From the IMG/VR virus record IMGVR_UViG_3300033984_000473, positions 1 through 64,000 of that record: a stretch of 64,000 nt of DNA; one strand, 5' to 3'. The position numbers and the translations under genes are program-made. Under the pieces are notes generated by a model. The model saw only the letters and a program-made list of their open reading frames with translations, searched no databases and had not been told where the DNA came from. This document shows, piece by piece, positions 21,897 through 63,307 of the stretch. Position 1 is the first letter of the stretch. Every line of letters begins with the position of its first letter.

Positions 21897-22235
21897 ATGA
21901 AAAACTTTATAAAAAGATTGCTTAGAGAACAAATGATTGATGGTCAAAACATGAACAAAGGAACACAATATGCGTGTAACAAAATGACTATCAATAGTTA
22001 TTCTGAAGCGTTGGAAAATGTTGAAAGAGCTTTGAAAGGTGCTAACCCAGAAACTAGAACACGTGTTATGCAAAAAATTCACGCACCTTTAGAAAATTTA
22101 AAGAACGAAGAAAGTAAAATTACTGACGAAGTTAAAACAGCACATATGTCTGGGGATTCAATACCAGATGAGGCTGACACGTACTGGCATCAAATCCAGA
22201 CAACACTTTGCGAGATGGGTCCAGAATTCCAATAA
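21897..22235 (+). CDS. Hypothetical protein with N-terminal IKRLLRE peptide
   Basis: MKNFIKRLLREQ. Confidence 0.65.
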   Translation: MKNFIKRLLREQMIDGQNMNKGTQYACNKMTINSYSEALENVERALKGANPETRTRVMQKIHAPLENLKNEESKITDEVKTAHMSGDSIPDEADTYWHQIQTTLCEMGPEFQ

Positions 22236-22253
22236 ATTATTTTTAAAAAAGAC

Positions 22254-22285
22254 TTGACAAATAAAGTATTTGTCGTATATTTATA
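22254..22285 (+). promoter_or_regulatory. Promoter for the 22391 gene (TTG-N19-TATATTTA; also contains TATATTTATA)
   Basis: TTG 22254-56 and TATATTTA 22276-83, Bacteroidota-type spacing. Confidence 0.55.
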
Positions 22286-22286
22286 T

Positions 22287-23325
22287 TTACGTTAACTCAA
22301 CGTATTAGTCCCGACCATTAAAACGGTTTAGAGTTTAGAGATAAACAAAGGTATTAGTACACTAATAACAAACATTAAAAGTTAAACAACATGAAAAAAC
22401 AAATGATTATTGAACCGTCAAAAGCGGTTCCGACAGCTAACATTGCTGTAAACAAAAGTAGAATTAAAATCTACGAAAATGATGGCAACATGCCAACTTA
22501 CTATCTTCAAAAAGGACAAGAGTTCCAAATTGAATTATACAATCCGACTCAAGGAACTGTATTAGCAAAAATTTCACTTAACAACACATCAATTTCTCAA
22601 GGTGGTTTGGTTTTAAAACCTGGCCAAAGAGTATTTTTAGACCGTTATCTAGACGTAGCTAAGAAATTCTTATTTGATACTTATGAAGTATCAAATTCTG
22701 AAGAAACTAAAAAAGCCATAGAAAAAAATGGTGATTTTAAAGTTGAATTCTTTAAAGAACTATTACCAGTACGTTTTATACCATCTAATTTAATTGTAGG
22801 TGGTTCTTATGGTGGTTCTTTCGGTGGACCAAGTTATGGTGGTGGATATGCTCATACAACACTATCAACCAACATACCTAATGGTGTGTGTTCAACCAAC
22901 GGGTTAATTGAAACATCATCATCAGCGTATTACAACGCTACTTCTACTAACATAACTAATTGTAGTAGCAGCTTTTCAACAAGCGTAACGACAGATGCAC
23001 TTGGTTCTTTTTCTGATGATGTATTATCAGCACCTAAAGGTGGAATACTTCGTTCTGCAAAAAAATCAAAATCAATTGAAACTGGTAGAGTTGAACAAGG
23101 TTCAGATTCTGACCAAAAATTCAAAACATCAAACAAAGATTTTGAATACTTTGCTTTCCACACAATCGAGTGTAAGATGCTTCCAGTATCTCAAAAAATT
23201 AACACAGCTGAAGACATCAACGTGAAAAGATATTGTACAAACTGTGGTGCTAAGTTAGGAAAAACAGATAAATTCTGTTCTAGCTGTGGTACAAAAGCCT
23301 AAATAAATTACAAGAGTTAACGTAA
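22287..23325. repeat. 12-bp perfect inverted repeat bracketing a single gene (TTACGTTAACTC 22287-22298 / GAGTTAACGTAA 23314-23325)
   Basis: Direct reading; arms lie just after the promoter and just before the terminator. Confidence 0.75.
22391..23302 (+). CDS. Hypothetical protein with Gly/Ser-rich linker and C-terminal zinc ribbon
   Basis: CTNCG…FCSSCG at the C-terminus; stand-alone transcription unit. Confidence 0.75.
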   Translation: MKKQMIIEPSKAVPTANIAVNKSRIKIYENDGNMPTYYLQKGQEFQIELYNPTQGTVLAKISLNNTSISQGGLVLKPGQRVFLDRYLDVAKKFLFDTYEVSNSEETKKAIEKNGDFKVEFFKELLPVRFIPSNLIVGGSYGGSFGGPSYGGGYAHTTLSTNIPNGVCSTNGLIETSSSAYYNATSTNITNCSSSFSTSVTTDALGSFSDDVLSAPKGGILRSAKKSKSIETGRVEQGSDSDQKFKTSNKDFEYFAFHTIECKMLPVSQKINTAEDINVKRYCTNCGAKLGKTDKFCSSCGTKA

Positions 23326-23326
23326 T

Positions 23327-23359
23327 AAAAAAAGCCGAGGATTATTCTTCGGCTTTTTT
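23327..23359. terminator. Bidirectional intrinsic terminator between convergent genes
   Basis: AAAAAAAGCCGAGGA-TTAT-TCTTCGGCTTTTTT. Confidence 0.85.
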
Positions 23360-23361
23360 AT

Positions 23362-23820
23362 TTAATATGATGTCAGAATACAGCAGTTATAATCTTCTAT
23401 TGTTGAAATTCCTATATGTGTAAAATTAGGGTTATCTAATATTGCTTTATGTGGTGGCGAACCCAAATAAGCCGTAAGCATTGATAATGGAGTTTGATAA
23501 TTATAAGCTACTATTTCACCGACCCTTTCAGCGTGGCTTAAGTTTGCCCTAATGCTAAAATAATCATGCGAAAGAACACCTTTATCTATCATGTATAATA
23601 CATGACCAGCAGCTAGTTCTGTTGTTAACGAATCTATTTTTAAGACACTTAAACCATGGTCTACTCTATAATTATTAATTATTAAAAATAAAGTGTCATC
23701 ACTTTCAGATAAAACAATATTTTCATTTGGAATATAAATATCATTAACATGTTCTTTAGAACATGTTAATGATATTAGAATCATTATAAATAATAATAAG
23801 TAAGTGAATATCTGTTTCAT
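23362..23820 (-). CDS. CAP/SCP-domain secreted or lipoprotein
   Basis: Hydrophobic N-terminus with Cys; INNYR…GL, H..YM, LSH, GEIVA, SPPHKAIL, THIGI. Confidence 0.82.
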   Translation of the reverse strand: MKQIFTYLLLFIMILISLTCSKEHVNDIYIPNENIVLSESDDTLFLIINNYRVDHGLSVLKIDSLTTELAAGHVLYMIDKGVLSHDYFSIRANLSHAERVGEIVAYNYQTPLSMLTAYLGSPPHKAILDNPNFTHIGISTIEDYNCCILTSY

Positions 23821-23822
23821 AG

Positions 23823-24467
23823 TTAGTTTATTTTTAAGTTCATTTTATTTATCTGAAACAATTCATTTAAGTCTTTTATTGTTATTGGAATTATCTCACC
23901 ATTAACGTTTGAGCCAATCCAACAATACCTACGTTTGTCAATATATAGGATTTTAAAATATGAAATCGGTATTGGAATCTTGCTTTTTGGTAAATATTGT
24001 TTTTTTTGACCTTCATAAATGACTCCTGTGATGATAACTGTATCACGTTTATACTTGTATATCGAATCTTCAACACTTCCCTCTAATTGAGCCCATTTGC
24101 CTCTATTAAAGGCTGCTAGTTGTGGAGCTTGATTAAATAAGCTGAAAGACTCATGATTTAATACATTATCATAAGAAGTTATATGTGATGGGGTTAAGTG
24201 ACCTAAGTCGTAACCAGTGTGTAAATATAAATCTTTTTTATATTTTCCTTTGTACGTATCTTGAAACCAACGATTATCCCTTTCTTTATCTAACTTCAAA
24301 AAATTACCATACGAAATAGTATGTTTAGAAACCATTGCACATGTATCTTTTGTTAGATATAATGTGATATCACCGTAAGAGATGATTAATTTGTTGTTGG
24401 TTGTAACTGTTTGTGTGTAGCTGTTCATACTAATGAACAATACTAATAATAAAAACATTTTTGCCAT
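23823..24467 (-). CDS. Secreted DNA/RNA non-specific endonuclease (NucA/Serratia-type)
   Basis: Signal peptide; GYDLGHL, NQAPQLAAFNRGKWAQLE, IPIPISYFKI. Confidence 0.88.
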   Translation of the reverse strand: MAKMFLLLVLFISMNSYTQTVTTNNKLIISYGDITLYLTKDTCAMVSKHTISYGNFLKLDKERDNRWFQDTYKGKYKKDLYLHTGYDLGHLTPSHITSYDNVLNHESFSLFNQAPQLAAFNRGKWAQLEGSVEDSIYKYKRDTVIITGVIYEGQKKQYLPKSKIPIPISYFKILYIDKRRYCWIGSNVNGEIIPITIKDLNELFQINKMNLKIN

Positions 24468-24469
24468 AT

Positions 24470-25009
24470 CTATAATTGTATTTGAGTGAAATCGGAATCA
24501 TAAAACGGTATATTCCCTAATTTTTCTTTAAATGTAGAAAAAAAATCTGGTTCACTTATTTTAAAATCTTCTATTGTTCCACTTGCTGGTGTAAATCTAA
24601 TCCCCAGTAAATATTTAGATATTGGTTCTAATGTACCAATAAAAAATTCTTCACTTTCATTGTAATCACTTCTACTAGTATCCGCTTTTGTTTTGCTTCC
24701 AAATTGAGCAAAATAATCATGTGGTACTAATCTTTTACCAAAATCACGTTTTATCGCATCGCCATCTAGTATTAATTGTATATCACTAAAAATTAAATTA
24801 ACGTTTCTAGTTAGAGAAACACCATTATAATCTTTACTCTCACCATTAAATTTTGTTAATATTTTTTGGGTTGTTTTAGGTTCTATTTTATTATCACTAA
24901 TAATCTTTAATACTCTATCGATAAAAGTACTATGGTATAATATATTTTTACCCTTAAATGGTGATTTTAAAATTGATTCTCTAAGTAACTTTTGTATAAA
25001 TTCTTTCAT
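24470..25009 (-). CDS. Putative ADP-ribosyltransferase-fold protein with N-terminal LLRE peptide
   Basis: LYHST…GVSLTR…ESEE (H-S-ExE arrangement of ART folds); starts MKEFIQKLLRES. Confidence 0.55.
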   Translation of the reverse strand: MKEFIQKLLRESILKSPFKGKNILYHSTFIDRVLKIISDNKIEPKTTQKILTKFNGESKDYNGVSLTRNVNLIFSDIQLILDGDAIKRDFGKRLVPHDYFAQFGSKTKADTSRSDYNESEEFFIGTLEPISKYLLGIRFTPASGTIEDFKISEPDFFSTFKEKLGNIPFYDSDFTQIQL

Positions 25010-25012: not shown

Positions 25013-25022
25013 TATAAATATC
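25013..25022 (-). promoter_or_regulatory. Putative late promoter GATATTTATA, 3 nt before the ATG
   Basis: Minus strand reads GATATTTATA-GTT-ATG. Confidence 0.55.
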
Positions 25023-25079: not shown

Positions 25080-26921
25080 TTATCTTAATTCGTTGATATC
25101 AAATGTTGGAATACCATCAACTCTTACGTGACCGTAGAATCTGTTATTAACAACTTTTTTAGCGTAACGTGTCATAATACCTTTAACTGGAGCAAAGTTG
25201 AATGGGTTGTACATTGTTGGAGTTAATTGTAATGGAACGTATGGTGCATAGATATAACCAGTATCAAGTAATGATTTACCTTTGTGTCCGATGATTACTG
25301 AGTAAGGTGGAGCATAAGGGTCACGGTACACTTGGTAACGTCCGCTTAATGAACCGATTCTTTCAATACCCATGTTGTATTGGTCTTGCTCTGGGTTAGC
25401 ATCACTTACGTGGAAGTATTCTAAATCATCAAAAATAGCTGAGATTTCAGAAGAAACTACGATAAAGTTAGCACCACCTCTAAGAGTAGATTTGTGTATT
25501 TGAGCAGAAACTTGGTTTAATCTAGTGATTAAAGTTTGGTTCCAGTCTTTTTGAGTATATGGACTTGCAGCAGAAGAAGCTTTTCTCCAACCATTGTAAT
25601 CCCATCTCAATTGCCATGCAGCAGCTTTACGGATATCTCTAAGGATTTCACGGTCAATCTCAGCAGCAACTTGTTCAGATAACATAGCTGTTAATTCAGC
25701 TTCTGCATCAATGTTGTGGAATGCACTAACGTCTTGAGCAAGCTCTGGAGACCAAGTAGCACGTAATTTTCTTTCTTCAACAGCAACAACAACTTCGTCT
25801 AATTTGAAAGATACTTCTCCCATTTCAGTTTCAAGCTCTAATGTTGCGTATTCAGCCCATGCAGATGCAAATGTGAACGCTGTTACAGTAGTTGCAGAAG
25901 CACCAACATAACCATCATAAGTTGCAGTACCAGCACCACCAGCACCATTAGCTGTTGTTCCTACTGGGTGACGTAAGTCTAATTCTAAGTAAAGTGTACC
26001 AGTACCATCAGTCAATGCTTTTGAACCAGAAACAATTCCTTTACCATATTGTTGAGTAACTAATCTGAAAGGGATTTCTTTACCAGCAGCGATAATTGTG
26101 TTACCGTCACGGTCTAAGATACCTGTTACAGCAGAGTTAATAACGTGTAATGAAGCTAAGAATGACTCAGTATCCATGTTGTTACCATCAGCACCTGTCA
26201 TAACTTCTCTACCACCAGTTGTTACACCAGCAGAGAAACCAGAAATTCCTAAGATAATACCTCTTAATGAACCGTCAGTTGCAGTAGGTCCAGCAGACAT
26301 ACTTCCTGTAGCGATAGTGTAGTTACCATCAACTCCTAAAGTGAAAACAGCGTTAACACCAGGTTGGATAGTAAGAGTACCTTTAGAGTTATCAAATAAA
26401 CCATCATTGTAGAATGCATCGTAAAGATTTTTTCCAGCGAATGAAGTTACTGCACAATTAGCTTGGTTGATACAAGATGGAACACCACCGTTCATAGCTG
26501 TGTGAGCAGAGTAAGTAGTACCGTAAGCACCGTTACCACCATTAGCAGCGTAGTCAGAACCTGGTAAACCAGCAGCGTCAACACGTTGAGATGTAACTGG
26601 AACGAAGAAGAACAATTTACCGATTGGCATGTTCATAGCTTGTACAGATACGATATCATTAGCTAATAATTTAGAGAATACTCTACGTACAATTGGGAAT
26701 ACAACTGTTTCGAAAGAACCAGAAGAGTTAGTAGTAGTGTTTTCAGTTAATAATGTAGACGCTTGGTTTTCATATAACTGAGCGATGTTTTCTTTAACGT
26801 GTCCTTTTAGACCGTCTAGGAATCCTAATGAATCCCATTTAGATTGTGTTTCTTTACGGATAGCCTTCATGTGGTTTAATCCGATATTTCCAACCTGTCC
26901 AGATGTTAATAAATGTGACAT
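25080..26921 (-). CDS. Major capsid protein (T4 gp23-like) with a large Gly/Thr/Ala-rich insertion
   Basis: LYENQ, LLTE cleavage site, FPIVRRVF, VSVQAM..PIG, RKLRATWSPELAQD, IDAEAEL, YAPYVPL, GIMTRY. Confidence 0.96.
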   Translation of the reverse strand: MSHLLTSGQVGNIGLNHMKAIRKETQSKWDSLGFLDGLKGHVKENIAQLYENQASTLLTENTTTNSSGSFETVVFPIVRRVFSKLLANDIVSVQAMNMPIGKLFFFVPVTSQRVDAAGLPGSDYAANGGNGAYGTTYSAHTAMNGGVPSCINQANCAVTSFAGKNLYDAFYNDGLFDNSKGTLTIQPGVNAVFTLGVDGNYTIATGSMSAGPTATDGSLRGIILGISGFSAGVTTGGREVMTGADGNNMDTESFLASLHVINSAVTGILDRDGNTIIAAGKEIPFRLVTQQYGKGIVSGSKALTDGTGTLYLELDLRHPVGTTANGAGGAGTATYDGYVGASATTVTAFTFASAWAEYATLELETEMGEVSFKLDEVVVAVEERKLRATWSPELAQDVSAFHNIDAEAELTAMLSEQVAAEIDREILRDIRKAAAWQLRWDYNGWRKASSAASPYTQKDWNQTLITRLNQVSAQIHKSTLRGGANFIVVSSEISAIFDDLEYFHVSDANPEQDQYNMGIERIGSLSGRYQVYRDPYAPPYSVIIGHKGKSLLDTGYIYAPYVPLQLTPTMYNPFNFAPVKGIMTRYAKKVVNNRFYGHVRVDGIPTFDINELR

Positions 26922-26955: not shown

Positions 26956-28170
26956 TTATCTTTTTTCAACTCTGTTCATCAAATCAATGATTCTTTTTGT
27001 TGAAGGGTCAACATATGCTGTACTTTCGTTTAATTGTTTTGAAGTACTAGTAGATGCTTCTTTAATAATTTTACGTTCTACTGATTCGTTAATTGGTTTT
27101 CTTGAATCCAATTCGTTAGTAATAGTTTTGTAAAGTTTTTTTGATTCTACAAGGTTAGAAACTTCTCCATCAAATCTTTTGATGATATTTTGTTTCTCAG
27201 CTTTTGTAGTTGAATGCTCAGTTAATAATCTAGTTACATAAGTAAGATTACTATTGAACACTACAGTTTCAACTAATTTGCTTCTAAATTCTCTAAGAGC
27301 AGTTCTGAACTCGTCATTTTCAGCTTTTAGTTTAGTTGCTTCAGTTAGTAAACTGTTATATTTTTTAGTTGTTTCAGAAACTAATTTTTTTGCTGCGATA
27401 GATTCAGTTTTGATTTTACCAGCACCGCCAGTATTTGTCAAATCAGAATAAGATTTTCCATTTTGAGCTAAACCGATAACTAATTTTTCGTCTAGTTCTT
27501 CAACTTCTTCTTCTTCACCTTCTTCTTCACCTTCTTCTTCATCACCAACAGGTACTAAGTCATCTGGAATATCACTTCCTTCTTCTTCGTCATCCATTTC
27601 GATTTCATATTCCACATCGTCTTCTGCACCTTCTTCATCTTCCATACCCATATCGGCCATGTCTAAATCTAAATCCTCAGCTCCCGCTTCTGGTGTATTA
27701 CCATCTAATTTTACAACGTACTCACCTGGTTCTGAGATGTTCAAGTGAATTTCGTCACCCACGATTTCGATTTCGTCTTCGCCACTTAATTTTTTGTAGA
27801 TTGCGATTACGTCATCATCAGATGCTGCGGTCATATCCATTTCTTCTCCACCTAACGTATCAACGTCCATTCCCATTTCTGGTTCCATTTCTGGTCCCAC
27901 TTCTTCAGAGTCTTCCATGTCGCCTAAGCCACCTTCGATTGAATCATCTTCAGTACCTTCTTCATCAGACATTGTATCCAAGTCTAATTCTTCTGGTGCC
28001 TCTAAGTCTTCTTCTTCATAAATCTCTTTAACTAGAGATTCTTTCACTACACTATCAATTTCTTCTTTAGCTACGCTACGAAGTATTTCTTTTGTGTTAG
28101 CATTAAGAGCACTTTGAATATTTTTGATATCCAATAATGCTTCTTCAAGTATTGATTTGTTTTCTGCCAT
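26956..28170 (-). CDS. Prohead core/scaffolding protein (gp22-like role)
   Basis: Very acidic centre, coiled-coil C-terminus, many L/I-x-E sites; between protease and capsid genes. Confidence 0.8.
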   Translation of the reverse strand: MAENKSILEEALLDIKNIQSALNANTKEILRSVAKEEIDSVVKESLVKEIYEEEDLEAPEELDLDTMSDEEGTEDDSIEGGLGDMEDSEEVGPEMEPEMGMDVDTLGGEEMDMTAASDDDVIAIYKKLSGEDEIEIVGDEIHLNISEPGEYVVKLDGNTPEAGAEDLDLDMADMGMEDEEGAEDDVEYEIEMDDEEEGSDIPDDLVPVGDEEEGEEEGEEEEVEELDEKLVIGLAQNGKSYSDLTNTGGAGKIKTESIAAKKLVSETTKKYNSLLTEATKLKAENDEFRTALREFRSKLVETVVFNSNLTYVTRLLTEHSTTKAEKQNIIKRFDGEVSNLVESKKLYKTITNELDSRKPINESVERKIIKEASTSTSKQLNESTAYVDPSTKRIIDLMNRVEKR

Positions 28171-28301: not shown

Positions 28302-29027
28302 CTATTCAGATAAAAATTTATCTAAATTATTTAATAGGTTTTCTTTTAATATTGGTTTTTTAATTTCTACGTTTTCAACATATGGTGCCATTTCTTCTCT
28401 ACTTCTTCCAATCCACGCATCTGGTGTAGATGGTGCTGTAACAACATCCCAACAAATAATCTCGAAATCGTCTTGAACAATTTGCTCACCGTTTTTACCT
28501 TCTTTAAGTGAACCAACACCTCTAGAAGATACACCTATCTTAATTCTATTTCTTAGTAAGTTAGCAACTTCATCACCTTTGGTTGATACGATACCATAGT
28601 TAATAAAACCAGGTGTCATTAAGATTTCCATCTTACCCATAAGTGTATGACCTTCCCACCATGTTTCAACAATGTTGTGTGATATTCTATCACCAGCAAT
28701 AATTGAAGACTCTGGGTGGTCTAATTCACCAACAGCTCTACGTTCACGTATTGCTTCTTGATATAGTCTGTCTTGATGTTTAAGGATAGCTTCTGGATAG
28801 ATTCTACCATTACGATTAAGTATACCGTATTTCTGTAATACCACGTAAACTATAAGTGGTTCAACTATTGCTAGTTTCCCACCAGTATCTAGTTTTTTAA
28901 TTTCATTAATGAATGGTTGATTTCTAGGCTCTTCTGGAGATATATAACCAGCATCATGCTCGATTAATCCACCCCAACCGCTTTCACCACGTTTTAATAC
29001 TCTAAAGTCTTTATAATTTATGTCCAT
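28302..29027 (-). CDS. Prohead protease (T4 gp21-like)
   Basis: NRNGRIYP, GELDHP, SH, GVSSRGVGSL, DVVTAPSTPDA. Confidence 0.95.
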   Translation of the reverse strand: MDINYKDFRVLKRGESGWGGLIEHDAGYISPEEPRNQPFINEIKKLDTGGKLAIVEPLIVYVVLQKYGILNRNGRIYPEAILKHQDRLYQEAIRERRAVGELDHPESSIIAGDRISHNIVETWWEGHTLMGKMEILMTPGFINYGIVSTKGDEVANLLRNRIKIGVSSRGVGSLKEGKNGEQIVQDDFEIICWDVVTAPSTPDAWIGRSREEMAPYVENVEIKKPILKENLLNNLDKFLSE

Positions 29028-29045: not shown

Positions 29046-29055
29046 TATAAATATC
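29046..29055 (-). promoter_or_regulatory. Putative late promoter GATATTTATA
   Basis: 18 nt upstream of the protease ATG. Confidence 0.6.
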
Positions 29056-30205: not shown

Positions 30206-30973
30206 TTATTTTAAACTAGTTCTCAATTCTACCAATTTTGATATGTTTTTGAAAAAATCTTCATTGATTTCTAATTTGTCATTTAATAATTTGTCTTTAA
30301 CACGCAATAGTTTATCTTTTGCGTTTAAATCCGCACCTTCAAGTTTCAAGTTTATCATATCGATACACTCTCTAACTGTTGCTGTATATACTTCAGATTT
30401 TTTAACATCATCTGAATCAATCAAAGCTTTAAGAATTTGTTTTTCAGATTCATCTAACATTGAATATTTTTCATTGTATTTTTCAACCATGATAGTTGAA
30501 ATCATACTGTTAGGTAAATCGATTGATTCTTTAACTTCTTTTGGTTTATTTGTTTTCATGAAATTGATAATACTAGCAGTAGCCTCAACGATTGCGTCAA
30601 TGTTGCCAGTTGTTTTATCCGTAAATATTAATTTTGAAATATTTTCGTGTAACTCTTCATTTGTATATTCACCTTTAGCTTGTTCAAACAAGATTGGGTT
30701 AGCTAAAGCGAAATTAGCCTCAACTATATCGTTTTTTGAAAACTTTTTAAGTAGAGCAATATTTTCTTGTAAAAACAAATTTGCTTTAAATTCATTTTCC
30801 TCTATCTTATTTTCAATATTATTATAAACTAAAAATTGAGTTCTTAAAATATCACTCTCTTTAATAGTTTTTATGTATTTTTTGAACAATTGTTTGCTAT
30901 CGTTGTTTTTATCAACAAGCCCTTCAGCCAAAATTCCATTAAACGCATTTTTTATTTTACCAAAATTTTGCAT
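30206..30973 (-). CDS. Hypothetical head-module protein
   Basis: 255 aa, between portal and protease; AATATTTATTA motif upstream (~30988). Confidence 0.7.
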   Translation of the reverse strand: MQNFGKIKNAFNGILAEGLVDKNNDSKQLFKKYIKTIKESDILRTQFLVYNNIENKIEENEFKANLFLQENIALLKKFSKNDIVEANFALANPILFEQAKGEYTNEELHENISKLIFTDKTTGNIDAIVEATASIINFMKTNKPKEVKESIDLPNSMISTIMVEKYNEKYSMLDESEKQILKALIDSDDVKKSEVYTATVRECIDMINLKLEGADLNAKDKLLRVKDKLLNDKLEINEDFFKNISKLVELRTSLK

Positions 30974-31019: not shown

Positions 31020-33050
31020 TTATTCTTCCAACATTTTGTCAATACCACTAATCATGTCATCGATGTTTTCATTTATCTTAACATTCTTATCGTAAATCTT
31101 AACTTTTTCCTCTTTGTTTGTTTCAGTCGGTTTCACTGATTCTATTAGCAAATCAACAAATCTACCCTCGTATTTTTTATTTCTAGCATTAAGTTTTTCA
31201 CTCAAAATACTTTTTTCTTCTTTAAGTAATTTTTTTAATTTATTTACGGATTCAGCTACAGTTTCTGGGGCTTCTTCAGTTGCCGCAGCACCTTCTTCAC
31301 CACCAGCTTCAGTTGCCGCTGCACCTTCTTCACCTTCAGCACCACCTTCAGTGTCACCAAAGTCTAAATCTTCACCAGCACCGCCACCGCCACCGAATGA
31401 ACCACCTAGACCACCGCCACCACCAGCGGCACCATCTTCACCTTCTTCACCACCAGCAGCACCACCACCAGTTAATGCAAGTTGATAATCACCATAGATT
31501 CTATCTACAACATCAAACATACCAGTATGTTTAATAACATTACCAGAATTAGCCAATTCAGCTGAAGCGGCTTTTTCCATTCTTTGCTCAAGTAAATCTT
31601 GTTTGATTTCATCATCAGACCATCCTAGGATATCTCTATGTGCTTTAGTCATCGACATAGCACCAAATCCATTACCAGCATCGGCCACAGCATCTTTATA
31701 AAGAGTAATCTTCAATTGTAAATGCTCAATTTTAAGCATTTCAGCCTGTGTAGATGGGTTGTTAAGTGTAAGTGTAAAATTATCTAAGTCTTCTTCAAAA
31801 CCTAGAATGTATAAATGTATAATCGCAATCTTATTAAGCTCTTGAAGCATAGATTGTTGGATACGGTTGATTGTTCTAGAGAAACGAATATCTTGTAGAG
31901 CTAAGTTTTTACCCTCACCTGTAGCTTCCTCAAAACCTAAGAAAGGCTTAGGAACACGCAATGCTGTGAATAAATTTCTTTGTAAGTATTCAATATCTGC
32001 AATCTGGTCCAAGTTTTCAGCACCAGGCAATGTATCAATAGGGTTAGGTGCACCTTCAGTTCTCATAGGGATAAAGAAATCTTGGTCATTGGCCAATTGG
32101 TTATAACGTAAATCGATTTGACCAGTTTGTGGGTCAGTAATTGGCATACGTTTAAATCTGTCAGCAATTTGGTTTACGTAAGCTTCAACATCGGCATCAT
32201 CAATATTACCAACATAGATTTTATATACTCTACGTTCTGGAGCTCTAGTAACACGGTAAACAAGCATTGAATCCTCAGAAAGGATAAGTTGTTTCCAAAT
32301 ACGTCTTGCTTTCTCTAAAACTGATGTTCCGTAAGGTAAACGTCTATCATCACCTAGAAGTCTAAAGTGAGCAATTTGCCATGAATTGAATTCAACATCA
32401 CGACCTCTCCAGAAGAATTTTACTTTATCTGTACTACTAACTTCTTCGTTAGGTAATTCTCTACCAGAAATCATATCAAACAATCCACTTTCTCTACGTT
32501 CCATTTCATAGTTAGGCATTTGTTTACCACCTAACACACCATGAGTATCATCTATATTCAAATAAACAAAGTTATCACCGTATTTACATGTATTTCTAGT
32601 CCACATCGGTAATGATGTGTGCAAATCAAGTCTATTGAAGAATAAATCTTCTAGGATACCTTTTACACGTTTACTATCAGAATAGATATTCATTACCCTA
32701 CCGTTATCATTTACTGTTGTAGATTCTTCCATCATTACGTCTAATGCAGCCGCAATTGTTGGGTAAAACTCCATAGCTTCGAAATCGGAATAAGAACCGA
32801 TACGAGTTGTTTCATAGTTGATTGATTGTTGGAACAATCCACTCTCAACTTTTTTCCAAGTATTTCCTAATAACTTGTTTTGTTGTGCTTGTAACTTTGC
32901 TGCGTCAAACTCAGCTTTGTCAGTAGTTCTAAGTAATTCACCTTTACCCAAGTTGTAACGTTGAGTTGGTTGTTTTTGAGTATGCTTAACAGCATCTGGA
33001 CTAATTACTTGACCTAATCTTTGAAATAATGTTAAATTTTTATTTGCCAT
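31020..33050 (-). CDS. Portal protein (T4 gp20-like) with a Gly/Glu/Ala-rich C-terminal extension
   Basis: YGTSVLEKARRIWKQL…YRVTRAPERRVYKIYVGN, DFFIP, IDTLPG, ALRVP, DIRFSRTINRIQ. Confidence 0.95.
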   Translation of the reverse strand: MANKNLTLFQRLGQVISPDAVKHTQKQPTQRYNLGKGELLRTTDKAEFDAAKLQAQQNKLLGNTWKKVESGLFQQSINYETTRIGSYSDFEAMEFYPTIAAALDVMMEESTTVNDNGRVMNIYSDSKRVKGILEDLFFNRLDLHTSLPMWTRNTCKYGDNFVYLNIDDTHGVLGGKQMPNYEMERRESGLFDMISGRELPNEEVSSTDKVKFFWRGRDVEFNSWQIAHFRLLGDDRRLPYGTSVLEKARRIWKQLILSEDSMLVYRVTRAPERRVYKIYVGNIDDADVEAYVNQIADRFKRMPITDPQTGQIDLRYNQLANDQDFFIPMRTEGAPNPIDTLPGAENLDQIADIEYLQRNLFTALRVPKPFLGFEEATGEGKNLALQDIRFSRTINRIQQSMLQELNKIAIIHLYILGFEEDLDNFTLTLNNPSTQAEMLKIEHLQLKITLYKDAVADAGNGFGAMSMTKAHRDILGWSDDEIKQDLLEQRMEKAASAELANSGNVIKHTGMFDVVDRIYGDYQLALTGGGAAGGEEGEDGAAGGGGGLGGSFGGGGGAGEDLDFGDTEGGAEGEEGAAATEAGGEEGAAATEEAPETVAESVNKLKKLLKEEKSILSEKLNARNKKYEGRFVDLLIESVKPTETNKEEKVKIYDKNVKINENIDDMISGIDKMLEE
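31275..31333 (-). repeat. Imperfect tandem repeat encoding GEEGAAATE twice in the portal tail
   Basis: TTCAGTTGCCGC(A/T)GCACCTTCTTCACC occurs twice. Confidence 0.75.
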
Positions 33051-51215: not shown

Positions 51216-51422
51216 TTACTTTTTACCTTCAGTTAATTGTTGGAATTTAGCCTCTAACGCAGCAATTTTACCTTCTAAAACAGCAGTTTTATTGTTGGTT
51301 TTTTTAGCTTGTTCGTTAATCCATTCTTGTTTTTTCACAGCAACTGCTTCATTTACAATATTGTCGATTAAATCAACTAAATGGTTTTCTTTAATTTTAA
51401 CTGTTTTTTTTACGTTTGACAT
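51216..51422 (-). CDS. Small protein made mostly of head-targeting-like peptide plus coiled coil
   Basis: VKIKENHLVDLIDNIVNEA…INEQ…VLEG…LTEG; late motif at ~51457. Confidence 0.65.
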   Translation of the reverse strand: MSNVKKTVKIKENHLVDLIDNIVNEAVAVKKQEWINEQAKKTNNKTAVLEGKIAALEAKFQQLTEGKK

Positions 51423-51490
51423 ATGTTCTAAGTGTTAAATAAAATCTTATTTTCTATAATAAATATATTGAAATAATAGAAAAGTTTAAT

Positions 51491-52296: not shown

Positions 52297-53712
52297 TTAA
52301 CTTATATAAGTTGTTGGTAACAACTTCTTTAATTTTTGATAATTCTCTGCTCCTATGTCTTCTTCACGTACCCCTACTCTATGTAGCGACCCACCATTAC
52401 TTTTATCCAAATAGGCAATCTCAGACGGTATGTCTATTATCGGATTACCAATGATATTTAAAAACTGAAGATTTTTTAACGCACCTATTTCTTTTGGTAA
52501 TTCTTTGATACGGTTTTCCGTTAGAACCAACATTTCTAAATTCGTTAATTTACCGATAGATGGATGTAACTCAACCATCTTAGCATTTGTAATGATAAGT
52601 TGGTCAAGTGATTTAAACTTGCTAATATCTGGCAATCTCGGTATTTCTCTAGTCATAAATCTTATTGTTGGTGTGTCTTCTTCTAATAATTCAAATAAGC
52701 TCTCTGCGAACCCAAATTGAATTAAGTAATCTAAATATCTGTTATTCTCTAATCCTTTGCTATGGTTTTTAGCCATACCCATTAACTCTTCATAAAAAAA
52801 GTTACTAATACCCTCACTTTGGTTAATTACATCTTCAAAAATGCTAACATTCTGACCATTTCTACTATCTTTAAGCTGATTGGTTTCAAAGTGTATTTGA
52901 TATAACTCTTTTGAAGTCCCTTCAAAGAACTTATTGTTAATTATTATATAAATATCAGACTTTTTACCATTAGGCTTTTTATGACCTTCAGTATAGCTCT
53001 TGAACATACCATTTCCAGCTCTAGCTGTACACCAGTTAGCAAAGTTATCAAAAACCGTACTAGCTTCAGTGGTTTTAGGTATAAACAACGTAAACTTTCT
53101 ATCTTTTACTGGCATCTCTGCTTGTCCAGAATCTACAAATTTTTGTAGAGTTCTCTCAATAGCACTTGCATCTTTTTCGATAAACGGGTCTACCGAATCA
53201 AATAATTGCGATAAAGATTTGTATTGGTTAATATCCGTTGGGTCTGTTAAACCTTTAAGACTGTAGCTTCCTTTACATAAATCTTTAAATTTTTTCTTAC
53301 GTTTATTATCTTCAAATAAAACCAAATACTTATTTGCCTGTGGTAAATCTTCATCAACGAAACGAATTGCAGCGTCAACGCTAGATTGTTTACCATCTTT
53401 AATTAAACGTGTAAACATGTTCAACATCCATTGTATAAAAACCTTATTTTCTGTTGGGTCAGCAACAATCATTGAAGCAAACACGTCCGAACAGATACTA
53501 ACTTTTTTAAGTATTCTATCCTTTCCATTTGGTTTAACCGAAAGAATAGCCAACATGTTACCACTATGAGTCGTTATCAATGAAGACATGTATTGATTAT
53601 TTGTTAGTTCTTCCATTTTGCTCTCTAATTGAGAGTTCTCGGAACCACATTCAAACACATCAAATGTCTCAGCCAAAAATGTTAATCTATCGGTAATATT
53701 CTTTTCTTTCAT
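52297..53712 (-). CDS. Protein with a central WCTA-motif phage domain and C-terminal leucine-rich repeats
   Basis: TEAS…NWCTA…YIII…YQIHF; LRRs LTNLEMLVLTENRIKELPKEIGALKNLQFLNIIGNPI. Confidence 0.8.
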   Translation of the reverse strand: MKEKNITDRLTFLAETFDVFECGSENSQLESKMEELTNNQYMSSLITTHSGNMLAILSVKPNGKDRILKKVSICSDVFASMIVADPTENKVFIQWMLNMFTRLIKDGKQSSVDAAIRFVDEDLPQANKYLVLFEDNKRKKKFKDLCKGSYSLKGLTDPTDINQYKSLSQLFDSVDPFIEKDASAIERTLQKFVDSGQAEMPVKDRKFTLFIPKTTEASTVFDNFANWCTARAGNGMFKSYTEGHKKPNGKKSDIYIIINNKFFEGTSKELYQIHFETNQLKDSRNGQNVSIFEDVINQSEGISNFFYEELMGMAKNHSKGLENNRYLDYLIQFGFAESLFELLEEDTPTIRFMTREIPRLPDISKFKSLDQLIITNAKMVELHPSIGKLTNLEMLVLTENRIKELPKEIGALKNLQFLNIIGNPIIDIPSEIAYLDKSNGGSLHRVGVREEDIGAENYQKLKKLLPTTYIS

Positions 53713-53730
53713 GTTTATTCGTTTTATGAA

Positions 53731-53761
53731 CAAAGATACACAAAAAAAACGGATAAGGCAA
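53731..53761 (-). promoter_or_regulatory. Bacteroidota-type promoter TTG-N20-TATCTTTG
   Basis: Plus strand CAAAGATA 53731-38, CAA 53759-61. Confidence 0.7.
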
Positions 53762-54219: not shown

Positions 54220-54540
54220 TTAGAAATTTTTGATTTTATTATACAACCTATCTAGCTCTGGACTCTGGTGTCTAATTTGCCCGATTACTTCAATACACAC
54301 TTCATTAGGGTCAGAATTTTCTGTCAATTTATATTGAAGTTCTTTCACTTTCAAGGTGTCTTTTAAGGTATTCTTAAGTTCTAAAATGACTTGGTTATAA
54401 GTAACCCATGCTTGTTTGTTTTCGATGTCACCTAAAATAAGATTTTCAGTTAGCATGTCTTCATACTCGTGCTCTAAATATGTGTCAAAAGCACCGTAAT
54501 GCTCCCTTAATACTAGTCTTATTTTATCTTTAAGGTCCAT
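54220..54540 (-). CDS. Hypothetical protein with N-terminal IRLVLRE peptide (paralog of 53765-54106)
   Basis: WVTYNQVILEL…ELQYKLTENSDPNEVCIEVI. Confidence 0.7.
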   Translation of the reverse strand: MDLKDKIRLVLREHYGAFDTYLEHEYEDMLTENLILGDIENKQAWVTYNQVILELKNTLKDTLKVKELQYKLTENSDPNEVCIEVIGQIRHQSPELDRLYNKIKNF

Positions 54541-54551: not shown

Positions 54552-54893
54552 TTATCTATGTGAAACATTTTTAGATAACTGGAAGTCGTCAGTTATCTTT
54601 CCAAACATCCAATCTTTAATTACCTGTTTGGTGAAATCTTCCTTGGTCTTATATTTGAATTGCATGTAATCAAATAAATCTTTCGGTGAAATAACTTCAT
54701 CATCAAGGTTGACCTTAACCATTTTCATTGGTTTATAATCACCACCTTCACGTGCAAAATTTTCTGTGGGTGTATAGTTTGCATCCAACTCATCTTTCAT
54801 TTGTTTAACAATAGATGAATGTGCAGTTGACTCACTGATAAAATGTTTTAAGCGTGTTAATTGGCTTTCCGTTATGATTAATTTATTTTTCAT
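54552..54893 (-). CDS. Hypothetical protein with N-terminal LIITESQL peptide
   Basis: MKNKLIITESQLTRLKHFISES; GATATTTATA 3 nt upstream (54897-54906). Confidence 0.7.
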   Translation of the reverse strand: MKNKLIITESQLTRLKHFISESTAHSSIVKQMKDELDANYTPTENFAREGGDYKPMKMVKVNLDDEVISPKDLFDYMQFKYKTKEDFTKQVIKDWMFGKITDDFQLSKNVSHR

Positions 54894-54915
54894 ATCTATA
54901 AATATCTTTAGAAAT

Positions 54916-56880: not shown

Positions 56881-57348
56881 TTACAATCCAAAAACAATCA
56901 ACATCATATCATCTACGATTAAATTGCCTTGGTCATCGCTAAGTAGTTGAACCTCAAGTGTATCGTCAATAGTTATGATACCTTCACCAGTACGAGTCTC
57001 AACCTTAAGTCTATCCCAATCCAATTTTAAGTCTAGAGTAGCGGTATCTGTGTTGTCCTCGTTAACAAAATAATCAACTTCAATTTCGATATCAGTCGGC
57101 CCAGCAATGTTATAAAGAGAAATCCCTCTAACACCCCATTGTTTAGCGTCTAGTTCAATTTCAAATGCTACTGTAATCTTATGTGTTATTACGTCATTTA
57201 TCTCATGACCTTTTAATTTTGCATTTCTATAAGTAAAATCAACTCCAATTTCTCTCTGATAGGAATTGCTTCCAGATTTATCTTTAGAACCTTCGGTTAA
57301 CTTACCTTTAAGTCGTTCAAGTTGTGCTTCAGTTATTTTTAATTTCAT
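56881..57348 (-). CDS. Hypothetical protein with N-terminal LKITEAQL peptide
   Basis: MKLKITEAQLERLKGKLTEG; GATATTTATA at 57361-70. Confidence 0.7.
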   Translation of the reverse strand: MKLKITEAQLERLKGKLTEGSKDKSGSNSYQREIGVDFTYRNAKLKGHEINDVITHKITVAFEIELDAKQWGVRGISLYNIAGPTDIEIEVDYFVNEDNTDTATLDLKLDWDRLKVETRTGEGIITIDDTLEVQLLSDDQGNLIVDDMMLIVFGL

Positions 57349-57405
57349 AATCTTTTTTATTATAAATATCATTGATTATTAATAAAATTTGTAGTATATT
57401 TAAAC

Positions 57406-61053: not shown

Positions 61054-61085
61054 GTTGTTAATTTAAAGTTAATACTATTGAAGTA

Positions 61086-61117
61086 CAAAGGTATGTATAA
61101 TAAATGACATTTCCAAA
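61086..61117 (-). promoter_or_regulatory. Bacteroidota-type promoter TTTG-N20-TACCTTTG
   Basis: Plus strand CAAAGGTA 61086-93, CAAA 61114-17. Confidence 0.75.
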
Positions 61118-61134
61118 TTTATTTATCTTTTTAT

Positions 61135-61590
61135 TTAAAGTCGATTAATATTATCAATATCAAGCCATTCTCTTTGATGCAGATTTTGTCTATCCAATAG
61201 TTTTTTGGCATCGTTGATTTCTTTTTGCTCTTTAATCCTTTTCATCAACGCATCCATATCAGCCGTGGGTGCAACCGTTACCTTGTACCTATCCGTTCTC
61301 TCACCAGTTTCCGAGTGCCATCCAATTTGACATGACTCACACTGATAATAACCATCAACACCATTGGCCTCAACATCACCATCAGATAACTCAATAAAGT
61401 TTAAGTTGCTTATCTTTACAGGATTATCTTCAGTCCAATCATGATGCTCTTTCGCATATTTTATAGCTTGCTCCCTAGTTCTATAGTCACCAGTCAACGT
61501 ATCAATCAAATCAGCTTTGAACCAATCGTGACCACATTCTGGACATTTATCGCAATGGTTTTTGTCGGTAATCTTATAAATTTCTGTCAT
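61135..61590 (-). CDS. Hypothetical Zn-binding protein
   Basis: CPECGHDW…YQCESC; ATG 61590. Confidence 0.65.
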   Translation of the reverse strand: MTEIYKITDKNHCDKCPECGHDWFKADLIDTLTGDYRTREQAIKYAKEHHDWTEDNPVKISNLNFIELSDGDVEANGVDGYYQCESCQIGWHSETGERTDRYKVTVAPTADMDALMKRIKEQKEINDAKKLLDRQNLHQREWLDIDNINRL

Positions 61591-61606
61591 ATTTAATGTT
61601 TTTATA

Positions 61607-61637
61607 CAAAGATACGAAGCTTTAATCAAAAGTCAAA
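61607..61637 (-). promoter_or_regulatory. Bacteroidota-type promoter TTTG-N19-TATCTTTG
   Basis: Plus strand CAAAGATA 61607-14, CAAA 61634-37; abuts a divergent AATATTTATA motif (61637-46). Confidence 0.72.
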
Positions 61638-61663
61638 ATATTTATATAAAAATCTTATAACAA

Positions 61664-63307
61664 ATGAAATTATTTTTACATAGAAATATAATACTAGAAA
61701 ACTATTCAGTTCCAACCGATAAACAACCTATCGATGAAATTGATGATATAGCCAATAGTATTTCTGATAACATATCCAAAGAAGTTAGAATACCTAAAGA
61801 TGTTCTAGATAGCTTCCAAATCAAAGATACCCTTAACCCAGATATCTGGGACAACGATACTCTTAACCCACAAGTAAGTACCAAGCTTAACAAAATAGCC
61901 ATGGACTTCTTTAAAAAGCTTAACCTTCCAGCTGAAGTTAAAATGAAAGACATAATCTTTACAGGTAGCCTCGCTAACTATAACTGGTCAAAGTTTTCCG
62001 ATATCGATGTACATATCGTACTAGACTTCTCACAATTAGAAGGTGGTGAACAATTTAAAGAAGATTTCTTCTATGCTCAAAAAGCCCTATGGAATCAAGA
62101 ACATGATATTACAATACATAGCTACCCAATCGAACTATACGTTCAAGACGTTAAAGCTAAGCTAACAGCAACAGCAGTTTATTCTGTAAAGAATAACAAA
62201 TGGATTCTTAAGCCAAAGCGTGAAGAATTCAAGGTAAATAAAAGCGTAATCAAAAACAAAGCCGATAAATTTATCGCAACCCTTAAAGATATAAAAAAAT
62301 CATACGAAGAAAATGACTTTCAAGCAGTTGTAGATAAGGTAGAAGTTATCAAAGATAAAATCAAAAAATATAGAACAGCTGGTCTTGAAAAAGGTGGTGA
62401 GTTCTCAATAGAAAACATGGTATTTAAGGTGCTTAGAAGAACATCGTTTATGGATATCCTAGATAGCTACAAAGCCAAAGCCTACGATACTCTTATGAGC
62501 GTGAAAGAAGCAATAACCGAAACCAGAAAATTAATCAAACAAAGACTTGATGAGATTTCTTATGGAAGTATGTACGCAACTAAAAGCGACCTAGCAAGAA
62601 CCATGGCCAGAGTTACAAACGCATACCAATTCGTTCAATCAAGACCCAAACCAGAACTAGTTAACTATTGGAACATAATCACACACAACCCAACAGAACA
62701 AGGATTTATAGCTTCAGCTGTTATTGATATTCGTGGTGATGTGCAAATTAGAACATACAACGCTGCCGCTGGTGATGTTAGACAAAATAGATTCGACCTA
62801 AGAGGTGAAGATTCAGAACATCTAGTTCTTCCAATCTCAGCCCACCCAGGTATCGACCACCCTAACGCAAAACAAAGAACAGGTTACGCTGTTACAAAAG
62901 GTGGTATAAACAACCCAACAGCTGTGGGGCAAGGTGACTTCGGTTCCCCAGCATCAGACGCTCAAATAAAAGCATACTTCAAATATGGTGAAGTCATTAT
63001 AGATTTCGTTAAGTCTAAGATGGAAGAAAAAACAAAATCATATACAGACGGTAGTGGTGCCGAAGTTTCAGCACAAGCAATGGCCAACAACCCAGCACTG
63101 CAAAAAAAGAAAACCAAAAAGGATTTGGAAATGGAACTAGGTAGAAGAATTACTGACGCACAATTTCAAACATACTTAGATACAAACGAAAAACCAGAAG
63201 GTAGAAAAGCTACAAGCATCGAACCAGACAAAGCTGCCGAATTCGAAAAAAGACAAGCCGATGCCATCGCAAGAAGAAATCAAGCCATGGCAAGAAGAAA
63301 TAAATAA
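61664..63307 (+). CDS. Pol-beta-superfamily nucleotidyltransferase fused to an unknown C-terminal domain
   Basis: GSLANYNWSKFSDIDVHI, IELYVQ, R..GL…GEFSIENMVFKVLRR; linker VKEAITETRKLIKQRLDE. Confidence 0.8.
   Translation: MKLFLHRNIILENYSVPTDKQPIDEIDDIANSISDNISKEVRIPKDVLDSFQIKDTLNPDIWDNDTLNPQVSTKLNKIAMDFFKKLNLPAEVKMKDIIFTGSLANYNWSKFSDIDVHIVLDFSQLEGGEQFKEDFFYAQKALWNQEHDITIHSYPIELYVQDVKAKLTATAVYSVKNNKWILKPKREEFKVNKSVIKNKADKFIATLKDIKKSYEENDFQAVVDKVEVIKDKIKKYRTAGLEKGGEFSIENMVFKVLRRTSFMDILDSYKAKAYDTLMSVKEAITETRKLIKQRLDEISYGSMYATKSDLARTMARVTNAYQFVQSRPKPELVNYWNIITHNPTEQGFIASAVIDIRGDVQIRTYNAAAGDVRQNRFDLRGEDSEHLVLPISAHPGIDHPNAKQRTGYAVTKGGINNPTAVGQGDFGSPASDAQIKAYFKYGEVIIDFVKSKMEEKTKSYTDGSGAEVSAQAMANNPALQKKKTKKDLEMELGRRITDAQFQTYLDTNEKPEGRKATSIEPDKAAEFEKRQADAIARRNQAMARRNK

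Follow-up and report, generated by a model that had tools for sequence, protein, structure and literature searches.

Introduction

Injected phage proteins act before phage gene expression and are rich in anti-defence and host-takeover functions, and they are normally found only through virion proteomics of cultured phages. In phage T4, the prohead protease gp21 cuts after L/I-x-E, and the ADP-ribosyltransferase (ART) Alt is packaged and processed at both termini (PMC9026906). The T4 capsid-targeting sequence (CTS) is a peptide of 10 residues, MKTYQEFIAE (PMC8442874); targeting depends on its residues 4 and 7, and processing on residues 8 and 10 (PMC9026906). Here we describe short peptides carried by unrelated proteins in a stretch of 64,000 nucleotides (the window), positions 1 to 64,000 of the record IMGVR_UViG_3300033984_000473, a viral contig of 233 kb with 32% G+C. 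The DNA comes from a T4-like jumbo phage that has not been cultured and that probably infects a member of the Bacteroidota. The initial annotation of the window had listed ten such peptides as a portable tag for loading diverse enzymes into the prohead. We distinguish two types, tag1 (consensus MKx[FLIV]IKKLLRE) and tag2 (consensus MKxIIITExQ[LF]xxLIxE). These peptides are modular, keep a conserved boundary with the cargo, are selected as protein, are restricted to phages, co-occur with a T4-type head module and are associated with a promoter-like motif. We hold it to be fairly probable that they act in the manner of the T4 CTS, as leaders for capsid targeting and cleavage, and that they do so on an unusually large scale.

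Like the T4 CTS, the tags are leaders of about 10 residues that start with MK at the N-terminus, are common to unrelated proteins and end in the gp21 site L/I-x-E. Like T4, this phage has a gp21-family protease, a Gp23-type capsid, a Gp20-type portal and scaffold proteins. The tagged cargo includes an ADP-ribosyltransferase, as Alt is, and the processing of Alt at two ends parallels a C-terminal tag in the window. Unlike the T4 CTS, the present system uses two interchangeable leader types and short degenerate forms, and it serves dozens of cargo families rather than a handful. It also differs in its conserved internal and C-terminal copies, in a second LxE that often follows directly and in its probable Bacteroidota host, and it is known here from sequence alone.

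In SPN3US, the head paralogues gp53 and gp54, which are both processed, share the identical N-terminus MANFVKSKLARESVE (PMC5694885). With a one-residue gap allowed, this sequence resembles MKNFIKKLLRE/SxxE (a slash marks the joint between leader and cargo, or a cleavage site); we take the resemblance as a lead and not as homology, and it may point to an older and wider leader type in phages with gp21-like proteases. The propeptides of phiKZ-like giant phages (SPN3US gp53/gp54, phiKZ gp93) are similar to the tags in that a diverged gp21-like protease cuts them after Glu and in that they contain redundant sites. Unlike the tags, they are cut at A/S-x-E, are mostly longer than 100 residues and have a leader common to paralogues only. 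In the boundaries examined here, P3 was L, I or V and never A or S, and the protease resembles T4 gp21 more closely.

The polyvalent proteins described from phages and conjugative elements contain domains that are predicted to act as effectors and to enter the cell together with the DNA (Iyer, Burroughs, Anand, de Souza and Aravind 2017; PMC5512222). The tagged cargo likewise has ART-PolyVal, GNAT, Pol-beta nucleotidyltransferase, kinase or kinase-like, metallopeptidase and ParB-like domains. At least two disparate effector domains, as in polyvalent proteins, occur in the product of 48276-49145 (GNAT, Zn-ribbon and zincin), which is a small polyvalent protein, and in that of L005 (GNAT and ART-PolyVal); L-numbers (L005, L066, L140 etc.) are labels of the compared loci. 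Since most tagged proteins are single-domain, the tag system as a whole is not a polyvalent family; what unites its effectors is a shared leader rather than fusion, and where fusion does occur, the junction is marked by the leader or by a bare LxE. The cargo-loading peptides of encapsulins are also short, portable terminal labels that bring diverse enzymes, from either terminus, into a shell of the HK97 fold. This is an analogy only, as those peptides are uncleaved, bind the shell of a non-viral compartment and have no sequence similarity to the tags.

Tagged proteins in the window

All ten peptides of the initial annotation, which cites them by gene rather than by peptide position and gives minus-strand genes by their stop end, were found in the genes named. 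The assumption that they represent one shared peptide was correct in part: FIKRLLRE, FIQKLLRE, LIKNLLRE and LIKRLIRE (the core set) form one non-random motif, tag1, whereas three of the ten are at chance level and, of the rest, two belong and one probably belongs to a second leader. A regular expression written from the four core copies gave 4 matches against 0.01 expected from residue shuffles. As this test is circular, the patterns having been written from the instances, it was replaced by a position-specific scoring matrix (PSSM) trained only on tags of other contigs, with a training set limited by the DNA search pattern. The core copies scored 21.2, 20.9, 20.9 and 14.3 bits with this external model, for which a shuffled proteome is expected to give 0.06 matches at ≥14 bits, 0.5 at ≥8 bits and 2.4 at ≥6 bits. 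A profile scan had been suggested as a check, and when the PSSM was run over the window proteins, none besides the four core copies reached 8 bits. KIRLVLRE (1.5 bits), LIKQRLDE (6.1 bits) and LITKNQLLE (-2 bits) were at chance level under the tag1 model. LIITESQL and LKITEAQL are true copies of tag2, a widespread N-terminal leader, and VKIKENHL...IVNE is probably a conserved variant of it.

Chance resemblance, arising from low-complexity Lys/Leu/Glu-rich sequence in an AT-rich genome, is favoured by the scores of these three peptides and by the frequent occurrence of [LI]-x-E in the window proteome. For the core set it is already refuted, since the external model gives 14-21 bits where 0.06 matches at ≥14 bits are expected, and since identical N-terminal copies run into the hundreds in related phages whereas 596 Gb of cellular genomes contain 10. 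The probability that we leave to chance is negligible. The peptides and the proteins bearing them are as follows.

21897-21929, plus strand: tag1 leader MKNFIKRLLRE (peptide FIKRLLRE at 21906-21929), N-terminus of the 112-residue protein 21897-22235; 20.9 bits
24977-25009, minus strand: tag1 leader MKEFIQKLLRE (peptide FIQKLLRE at 24977-25000), N-terminus of the 179-residue ART-like protein 24470-25009
48276-49145, plus strand: three-domain protein with GNAT, Zn-ribbon and minigluzincin-like HExxH peptidase; true start MIEDIL, 4 nt after the promoter-like motif ATATTTAT at 48264-48271
48603-48647, plus strand: internal tag1 MKENFKPLIKNLLRE (peptide LIKNLLRE at 48624-48647), at residue 125 of 297 of protein 48276-49145; 21.2 bits
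49398-49451, plus strand: C-terminal tag VTE/NTKTLIKRLIRE/NIK (peptide LIKRLIRE at 49419-49442), end of the DUF5661 protein 49149-49454; 14.3 bits
51348-51422, minus strand: tag2-like leader MSNVKKTVKIKENHLVDLIDNIVNE of the 68-residue protein 51216-51422
54831-54893, minus strand: tag2 leader MKNKLIITESQLTRLKHFISE of the protein ending at 54552; true ATG at 54893, 4 nt after ATATTTAT
57292-57348, minus strand: tag2 leader MKLKITEAQLERLKGKLTE of the protein ending at 56881; true ATG at 57348; fits the tag2 consensus
61664-61699, plus strand: degenerate leader MKLFLHRNIILE, N-terminus of the 547-residue nucleotidyltransferase-like protein 61664-63307; missing from the initial annotation
62531-62554, plus strand: LIKQRLDE, weak tag-like match inside the 61664 protein; 6.1 bits; status uncertain
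54502-54540, minus strand: MDLKDKIRLVLRE, weak candidate at the N-terminus of the 106-residue protein 54220-54540, including KIRLVLRE; 1.5 bits
36589-36615, minus strand: LITKNQLLE, near the C-terminus of the structural-module protein 36535-37575; -2 bits

Conserved copies were found at the N-terminus, internally and at the C-terminus, which bears out the proposal that the tag can stand in all three positions. The ART-like gene 24470-25009 is located directly downstream of the major capsid gene, and the top 5 PDB fold matches of its product all belong to the ART superfamily (Tpt1, DarT, PARP4), the matches being weak (E 0.02-0.25, TM-score ~0.45). In its AlphaFold2 (AF2) model, residues 1-11 of the leader had a predicted local distance difference test (pLDDT) score below 50; the same was found for the leader of a second AF2 model (residues 1-9), and the cargo domain was confident. 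The leader thus stands apart from the fold of the cargo.

The internal tag1 of the 48276 protein sits between the GNAT domain and the part formed by the Zn-ribbon and HExxH peptidase. The GNAT domain was found by Pfam and also fits a 3925-position PHROG profile. In the zincin, HExxH and a downstream EN were invariant in 10 homologues; the AF2 model of the peptidase (pLDDT 85) matched the folds of jannalysin, abylysin, selecase, SPRTN and Wss1. The L140 orthologue contains the internal copy MKPIIKKLLRE, and L134 and L282 encode the peptidase part separately, in a gene that begins with the tag. Each of the domains is found alone elsewhere, headed by tag1, tag2 or a short MK...[LI]xE leader, and a single open reading frame (ORF) of L126 carries one tag at its N-terminus and another at residue 170.

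LIKRLIRE ends 3 residues before the stop of the DUF5661 protein. The ending ...[VI]TENTK[ST]LIKRLIRE plus 2-4 residues was present in 86 of 96 database DUF5661 homologues, most of the others appearing truncated, and the L134 and L140 orthologues carry it as well. Among the tag2 proteins, those of 54552 and 56881 are clear members. The orthologues of the former (L066, L202, L282) have both the leader and an [ILV]-x-E ahead of the point where the conserved cargo begins, and orthologues of the latter also retain [ILV]-x-E at this position. The orthologues of the 51216 protein have the leaders VRIKESELVDLIDNIVNE (L140) and VKITENELVELIDNIVSE (L066); its assignment to tag2 is plausible, not firm.

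The L077 orthologue of the nucleotidyltransferase-like 61664 protein begins with the canonical MKNIIKKLLRE, and the 61664 protein itself scored 20.6 bits with NTP_transf_2, just under the Pfam cutoff of 21. LIKQRLDE is located where the shorter orthologues stop (~residue 290; those of L069 and L056 have 289-301 residues). No homologue of the protein's second half was present in the compared loci, and the idea that LIKQRLDE marks a fusion junction is therefore drawn solely from the orthologue lengths. In the 54220 protein, N-terminal ..KIRxxLRE is kept in the L066 and L282 orthologues, and KIRLVLRE may simply be part of its domain. LITKNQLLE was rejected as a tag because of its score and because it is not conserved in the L085 homologue; it is at most a possible LLE protease site. 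Pfam and PHROGs searches of the tagged window proteins mostly gave no matches. The enzyme labels of the initial annotation stand: GNAT by Pfam, the ART-like fold by weak matches, the zincin peptidase, and the nucleotidyltransferase just below the Pfam cutoff.

Tag1 and tag2 in related viruses

IMG/VR was scanned with the back-translated tag1 peptide, and at least 120 stretches were obtained. Together with the first loci, the scan gave at least 100 distinct tag1 N-termini, and the 90 complete tag1 ORFs fall into at least 40 cargo families without BLASTP relation at 1e-4. Pfam assigned ART-PolyVal (3 families), GNAT (3), Pterin_4a and GP88 to this cargo, with weak matches to Pkinase, NTP_transf_2 and DUF3990 and none for most. 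A scan for tag2 with the pattern MK-x(1-4)-ITExQL gave at least 90 N-terminal copies, typically MK[x]IIITE[SEQN]Q[LF]KxLIxE, in at least 57 cargo families. Both peptides are thus portable modules on unrelated proteins, as had been suggested from the window.

Among the matches listed, 13 tag2 proteins were homologous to tag1 cargo, which gives four cargo families that occur with either leader at the same joint. One family reads MKDLIKKLLRE/AVGVP with tag1 and MKNILITENQLRLITE/ALGVP with tag2; further examples are a CxxCGW Zn-ribbon family and the RVYHGF ART-like family. It is because of this shared cargo, and not because of their sequence, that the two peptide types can be placed in one functional class, and on this ground we retain their earlier grouping.

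In 596 Gb of genomes of bacteria and archaea the tag1 DNA pattern was found only 10 times, compared with the at least 120 stretches in IMG/VR. Nine of the 10 look like chance matches, e.g. a Flp-pilin-like N-terminus and a likely tRNA synthetase. The remaining one is a genuine tag1, MKDLIKKLLRE, on L287 (PLXT01000115.1), a 170-kb contig with 34% G+C labelled as a Methanobacterium sp. metagenome-assembled genome (MAG), in front of cargo homologous to that of L062; L287 is probably of phage origin and was placed in the archaeal MAG by misbinning. Among the matches listed, 53 of 120 tag1 loci carry homologues of the window's structural genes in their short flanks, and the capsid N-termini of tag1 loci are 82-100% identical. 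These flanks and capsid N-termini indicate that the tag marks one clade. L006 (12 kb of a 22-kb contig) contains five separate tag1 genes within 12 kb, beside the capsid gene, and the stretch between the capsid gene and the homologue of gene 20499 appears to be a variable island for tagged cargo genes.

By capsid protein, the closest cultured relative is Flavobacterium phage immuto, with ~41% identity over the C-terminal 40% only. No tag was found in the first 50 kb of immuto (NC_055915). In L295 (NC_055915.1, 110411-160410), related but different short leaders occur just upstream of the T4-type head module, on the genes at 1265-1729, 1851-2165, 2778-3536 and 3596-6121 of L295. They are MRLLELLRE on a homologue of tag1/tag2 cargo (E 4e-32), MKKSQLRQIIKE on a DUF5661 protein (E 2e-18), MKKLIRIVE and ...KLAGIITESQF. 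The DUF5661 domain of immuto bears its leader at the N-terminus, in contrast to the C-terminal tag of the window protein. Such related leaders are carried by gp079, gp080, gp082 and gp083 of immuto, whose host is Flavobacterium sp. LMO8. Immuto is a possible experimental system. When tagged proteins were compared by tblastn with 50,697 GenBank phage records, three gave no match; a fourth cargo matched Mycobacterium and Bacillus phages downstream of the leader only, and a fifth matched huge uncultured phages only. Since the Mycobacterium and Bacillus phage homologues of one tag2 cargo align from residue 16-21 only, the leader is absent there. In the literature searched, the strings IKKLLRE, KKLLRE and IITENQ were not found, and LIKKLL, ITESQL and ITEEQL occurred only in non-phage contexts.

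Cargo boundary and the T4-type head module

Across an alignment of 22 homologues of the 24470 protein, M1 and E11 were the sole invariant positions of the leader, and P3 was always L or I. The same rule for E11 and P3 holds in the degenerate leaders MIKLINLLKE and MIKLVDIIKE/SILK, and variants of this family with a 5-residue insertion add a second site, LLRE-GLTE/SILK. The cargo of 21897-22235 begins QMIDGQNMN, and the stand-alone members among the 41 IMG/VR homologues of this protein begin with MKxFIKxxLRE followed by the same sequence. In 9 fused loci of this family, which have 3 architectures, a domain of ~135 residues (in one case the ParB-like DGYHR) lies between the leader and the QMIDGQ domain. 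At the fusion junctions the tag is lost, yet [LIV]-x-E stands directly before QMIDGQ in 9 of 9. A second x[LI]hxE follows the tag1 leader at once in 33 of 97 copies (0.33 expected), and in 93 of 97 the position that follows LLRE is taken by G, N, S, E, A, Q or T. In tag2, a second [LIVM]-x-E most often ends at residue 15-16. [L/I]-x-E terminates both tags exactly at the cargo boundary, also in degenerate or fused variants. A T4-type L/I-x-E at this position had been predicted, and the alignments, the fusion junctions and the joint shared by tag1 and tag2 uphold it at the level of sequence.

A protease presumably suited to this site is encoded in the head module of the same window, which comprises the following genes.

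25080-26921, minus strand: Gp23-type major capsid protein (Pfam Gp23, E 1.7e-71)
26956-28170, minus strand: scaffold-like acidic protein, from direct reading of the sequence
28302-29027, minus strand: prohead protease of the T4 gp21 family (Pfam Peptidase_S77, E 4.5e-25)
31020-33050, minus strand: Gp20-type portal (Pfam Portal_T4, 5.4e-71)
33355-35184, minus strand: T4-type large terminase, part of the T4-type head module

The protease, which retains the motifs DHP and GVSSRG, aligns to structure 5JBL of T4 gp21 (E 1.1e-15), and it is the presumed enzyme cutting after [L/I]-x-E. In T4, Asp in place of Glu at P1 prevents processing but leaves targeting intact. Its own C-terminus, KKPILKE/NLLNNLDKFLSE, is tag-like, and ~35 loci read KKP[LI][LI]KE/NLLxxLDKFLSE. 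The predicted maturation site of the capsid protein, ASTLLTE/N, lies at 26742-26762 (minus strand). LL[TSN]E at capsid residue 60 is kept in 36 distinct homologues and is followed by the most variable stretch of the capsid N-terminus. The scaffold-like protein has no Pfam match; its homologues occur in 67 loci, and its C-terminal half contains LLTE twice, plus ALRE, KLVE, NLVE, INE and other sites. A gp21-family protease is therefore present, and so is the matching LLTE site of the capsid that the initial annotation had pointed out, the latter being conserved.

A sequence KLKKLLKEE at 31215-31241 (minus strand), in the C-terminal extension of the portal, was considered as a tag and dropped, since its conserved part is K..KLLxE only. 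This sequence and the protease C-terminus (28305-28361, minus strand) look like extra protease sites or core-binding helices.

The invariant Glu with L or I at P3 at the exact cargo boundary, the tandem second LxE, the [LIV]-x-E that alone persists at fusion junctions and the match to the LLxE sites of capsid and scaffold would all be left unexplained if the leader were a docking or degradation tag for another machine. Such a machine might be the phage ClpB/ClpC-like AAA+ unfoldase or a common host target that recruits the enzymes. The gene at 45698-48229 (plus strand) encodes a ClpB/ClpC-like double-AAA+ protein (Pfam Clp_N, AAA, AAA_2, ClpB_D2-small), and it immediately precedes the tagged 48276/49149 pair, both in the window and in L066, L107, L134, L140 and L282. 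The tag as an exposed amphipathic helix would suit this role, and degrons can work at either terminus. A degron common to at least 40 enzyme families is hard to rationalise, and we regard docking or degradation as an unlikely explanation. Apart from this question, the Clp-like AAA+ protein might handle tagged proteins.

Promoter-like motif and properties of the leader

With 14.3 copies expected, the window contains 32 of the motif ATATTTAT, which precedes 20 of 85 window genes, including those of the protease, 30206-30973, 39744 and 20499. It was found ≤70 nt upstream of 6 of 9 candidate tagged genes, and the other 3 are directly downstream of a motif-bearing gene, consistent with the claim that tagged genes mostly lie behind this motif. 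The converse claim also proved correct: of the 6 window genes preceded only by a host-type (Bacteroidota-type) TAnnTTTG element, none is tagged. The positions discussed here are the following.

25014-25021, minus strand: ATATTTAT, 4 nt before the ATG of the tagged gene 24470-25009
48264-48271, plus strand; 54898-54905, minus strand; 57362-57369, minus strand; 51459-51466, minus strand; 61638-61645, plus strand: ATATTTAT before tagged genes, 18 nt upstream in the case of the nucleotidyltransferase-like gene 61664
29047-29054, minus strand: ATATTTAT before the protease gene
20478-20485, plus strand: ATATTTAT before gene 20499

In related contigs, TATTTAT was present ≤24 nt upstream of 52 of 100 tagged N-termini, compared with 16% of untagged ORFs (Fisher p = 7e-15), and in 34 of those 52 it stood exactly 4 nt before the ATG. 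The spacing upstream of structural genes is 13-31 nt. The 4-nt spacing suggests leaderless mRNAs, and many mRNAs of tagged genes would be of this kind. ATATTTAT is a putative late-type promoter of the phage, late timing being deduced only from its position upstream of head genes.

The fixed spacing, the possibly leaderless mRNAs and the A-rich ATG AAA with which the leader opens could also mean that the peptide merely results from a signal in the RNA or DNA, such as the start region of a leaderless mRNA or a recombination site, and has no function as protein. Against this, synonymous codons vary freely in tag1 while the residues are constant: Leu9 is encoded by CTT, TTA, CTA or CTC (or replaced by Ile, ATT), Arg10 by AGA, AGG, CGA or CGT, and Ile5 by ATA, ATT or ATC. 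The same peptide stands at the C-termini of 86 of 96 homologues and at internal junctions, and the DNA of tag1 differs from that of tag2 although they occupy the same position on homologous cargo. We consider a pure nucleic-acid signal very unlikely. The synonymous variation, together with the C-terminal copy kept in the DUF5661 homologues, indicates that selection acts on the protein and not on the RNA.

As a peptide, the leader is strongly amphipathic, with a hydrophobic moment (muH) of 0.74-0.85. It does not resemble a Sec, Tat or lipoprotein signal peptide, being charged throughout (KK..RE) with a mean hydrophobicity of -0.2 to -0.4, and true signal peptides in the window (23362, 23823, 56220, 60115) look different. 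The high hydrophobic moment would fit a helix that acts within the infected cell, in membrane association or self-assembly, and that has spread by means of a mobile cassette of promoter and 5' end. Mobile regulatory cassettes are known in T4-type phages, and the fixed 4-nt spacing of the promoter is suggestive of such a promoter-plus-start cassette. The net charge and the short hydrophobic face are, however, atypical of membrane anchors, the conserved internal and C-terminal copies have no promoter, and the cleavage-type conservation of the boundary is left unexplained. An intracellular helix thus seems improbable to us.

Proposed packaging pathway

We prefer a T4-CTS-like leader because it alone explains jointly the boundary Glu with L or I at P3, the tandem sites, the bare LxE junctions, the match to capsid and scaffold, the gp21-family protease and a cargo list that mirrors T4 Alt and the domains predicted to be injected in polyvalent proteins. 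From the sequence we infer core binding, cleavage, packaging and injection as follows. Cargo genes would be expressed from the phage's own ATATTTAT-type promoters, which are common to head genes. Each cargo would bear an amphipathic helix (tag1, tag2 or a short degenerate form such as MKLFLHRNIILE) that binds the assembling prohead core, so that the cargo is enclosed as the capsid shell forms. The gp21-family protease 28302-29027 would then cut after the Glu of the terminal [L/I]-x-E and free the cargo inside the head; with the same specificity it would trim the capsid protein at LLTE and fragment the scaffold. In fused, polyvalent-like proteins one leader would be enough, and internal [L/I]-x-E junctions or tags would let the protease split the domains. 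In the DUF5661 family the label would be the C-terminal copy, flanked by two [L/I]-x-E-type sites. At the next infection the cargo would be ejected with the DNA and act before any phage gene expression; it would include ADP-ribosyltransferases, acetyltransferases, nucleotidyltransferases, a kinase-like protein, small zincin peptidases and many proteins of no known function.

Several points weigh against this pathway. The tags have in common with the T4 CTS only MK, a hydrophobic or aromatic residue at position 4 and the final Glu; no further homology is detectable, and we do not claim descent from the T4 CTS. [LI]-x-E occurs 319 times in window proteins; since it is common in helical proteins rich in Lys, Glu and Leu, the motif alone is weak evidence. 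The search for tags started from an ATG-AAR pattern and was thereby biased towards copies at the N-terminus. ATATTTAT also precedes non-structural genes (thioredoxin, the Clp-like ATPase), which leaves the late timing unproven. Some tagged cargo has a metabolic look, namely pterin-4a-carbinolamine dehydratase and a NUDIX-looking sequence. Finally, a C-terminal tag would remain on the protein unless the upstream VTE were also cut.

In its widest form, the proposal is that a large uncultured clade of T4-like phages, probably infecting Bacteroidota, possesses a capsid-cargo code that can be read from sequence. Two interchangeable leaders and bare LxE junctions would load ~100 unrelated effector families, with the label at the N-terminus, internally or at the C-terminus, and the prohead protease would also unpack polyproteins. 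We give this wider proposal an even chance. If it is true, metagenomes alone could suffice to list the enzymes that these phages inject as a first strike, those for anti-defence and host takeover included, the recognisable leader acting like a secretion signal for capsid cargo; more than 90 candidate families, most of no known function, are marked here. The leader would show how single-domain effectors and polyvalent fusions interconvert, and it could be reused to package foreign proteins. The CTS principle, so far known mainly from T-even phages, would be extended to a distant lineage and to a much larger scale.

Other features of the window

Between the two tagged genes next to the capsid gene, 23362-24467 (minus strand) encodes a CAP/SCP-family protein and an Endonuclease_NS nuclease, both with signal-peptide-like N-termini; the nuclease is kept at the same position in 23 loci. 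At 50066-51141 (minus strand), a P-loop ATPase-like ORF (50452-51141) and a GNAT-like ORF (50066-50593) overlap by ~140 nt in different frames, and they may be one gene with a frameshift, either programmed or erroneous. The region 52297-53733 (minus strand) encodes a protein of 471-478 residues with C-terminal leucine-rich repeats (LRR_14, LRR_4, LRR_8), also present in L066 and L140 in conserved form. An intein that contains a LAGLIDADG homing endonuclease splits the thymidylate synthase gene at 41387-43666 (minus strand; Pfam Thymidylat_synt 6e-85, Intein_splicing, LAGLIDADG_3). A 115-bp DNA match to immuto with 95% identity, at ~43037-43151 within this gene, reflects ordinary conservation.

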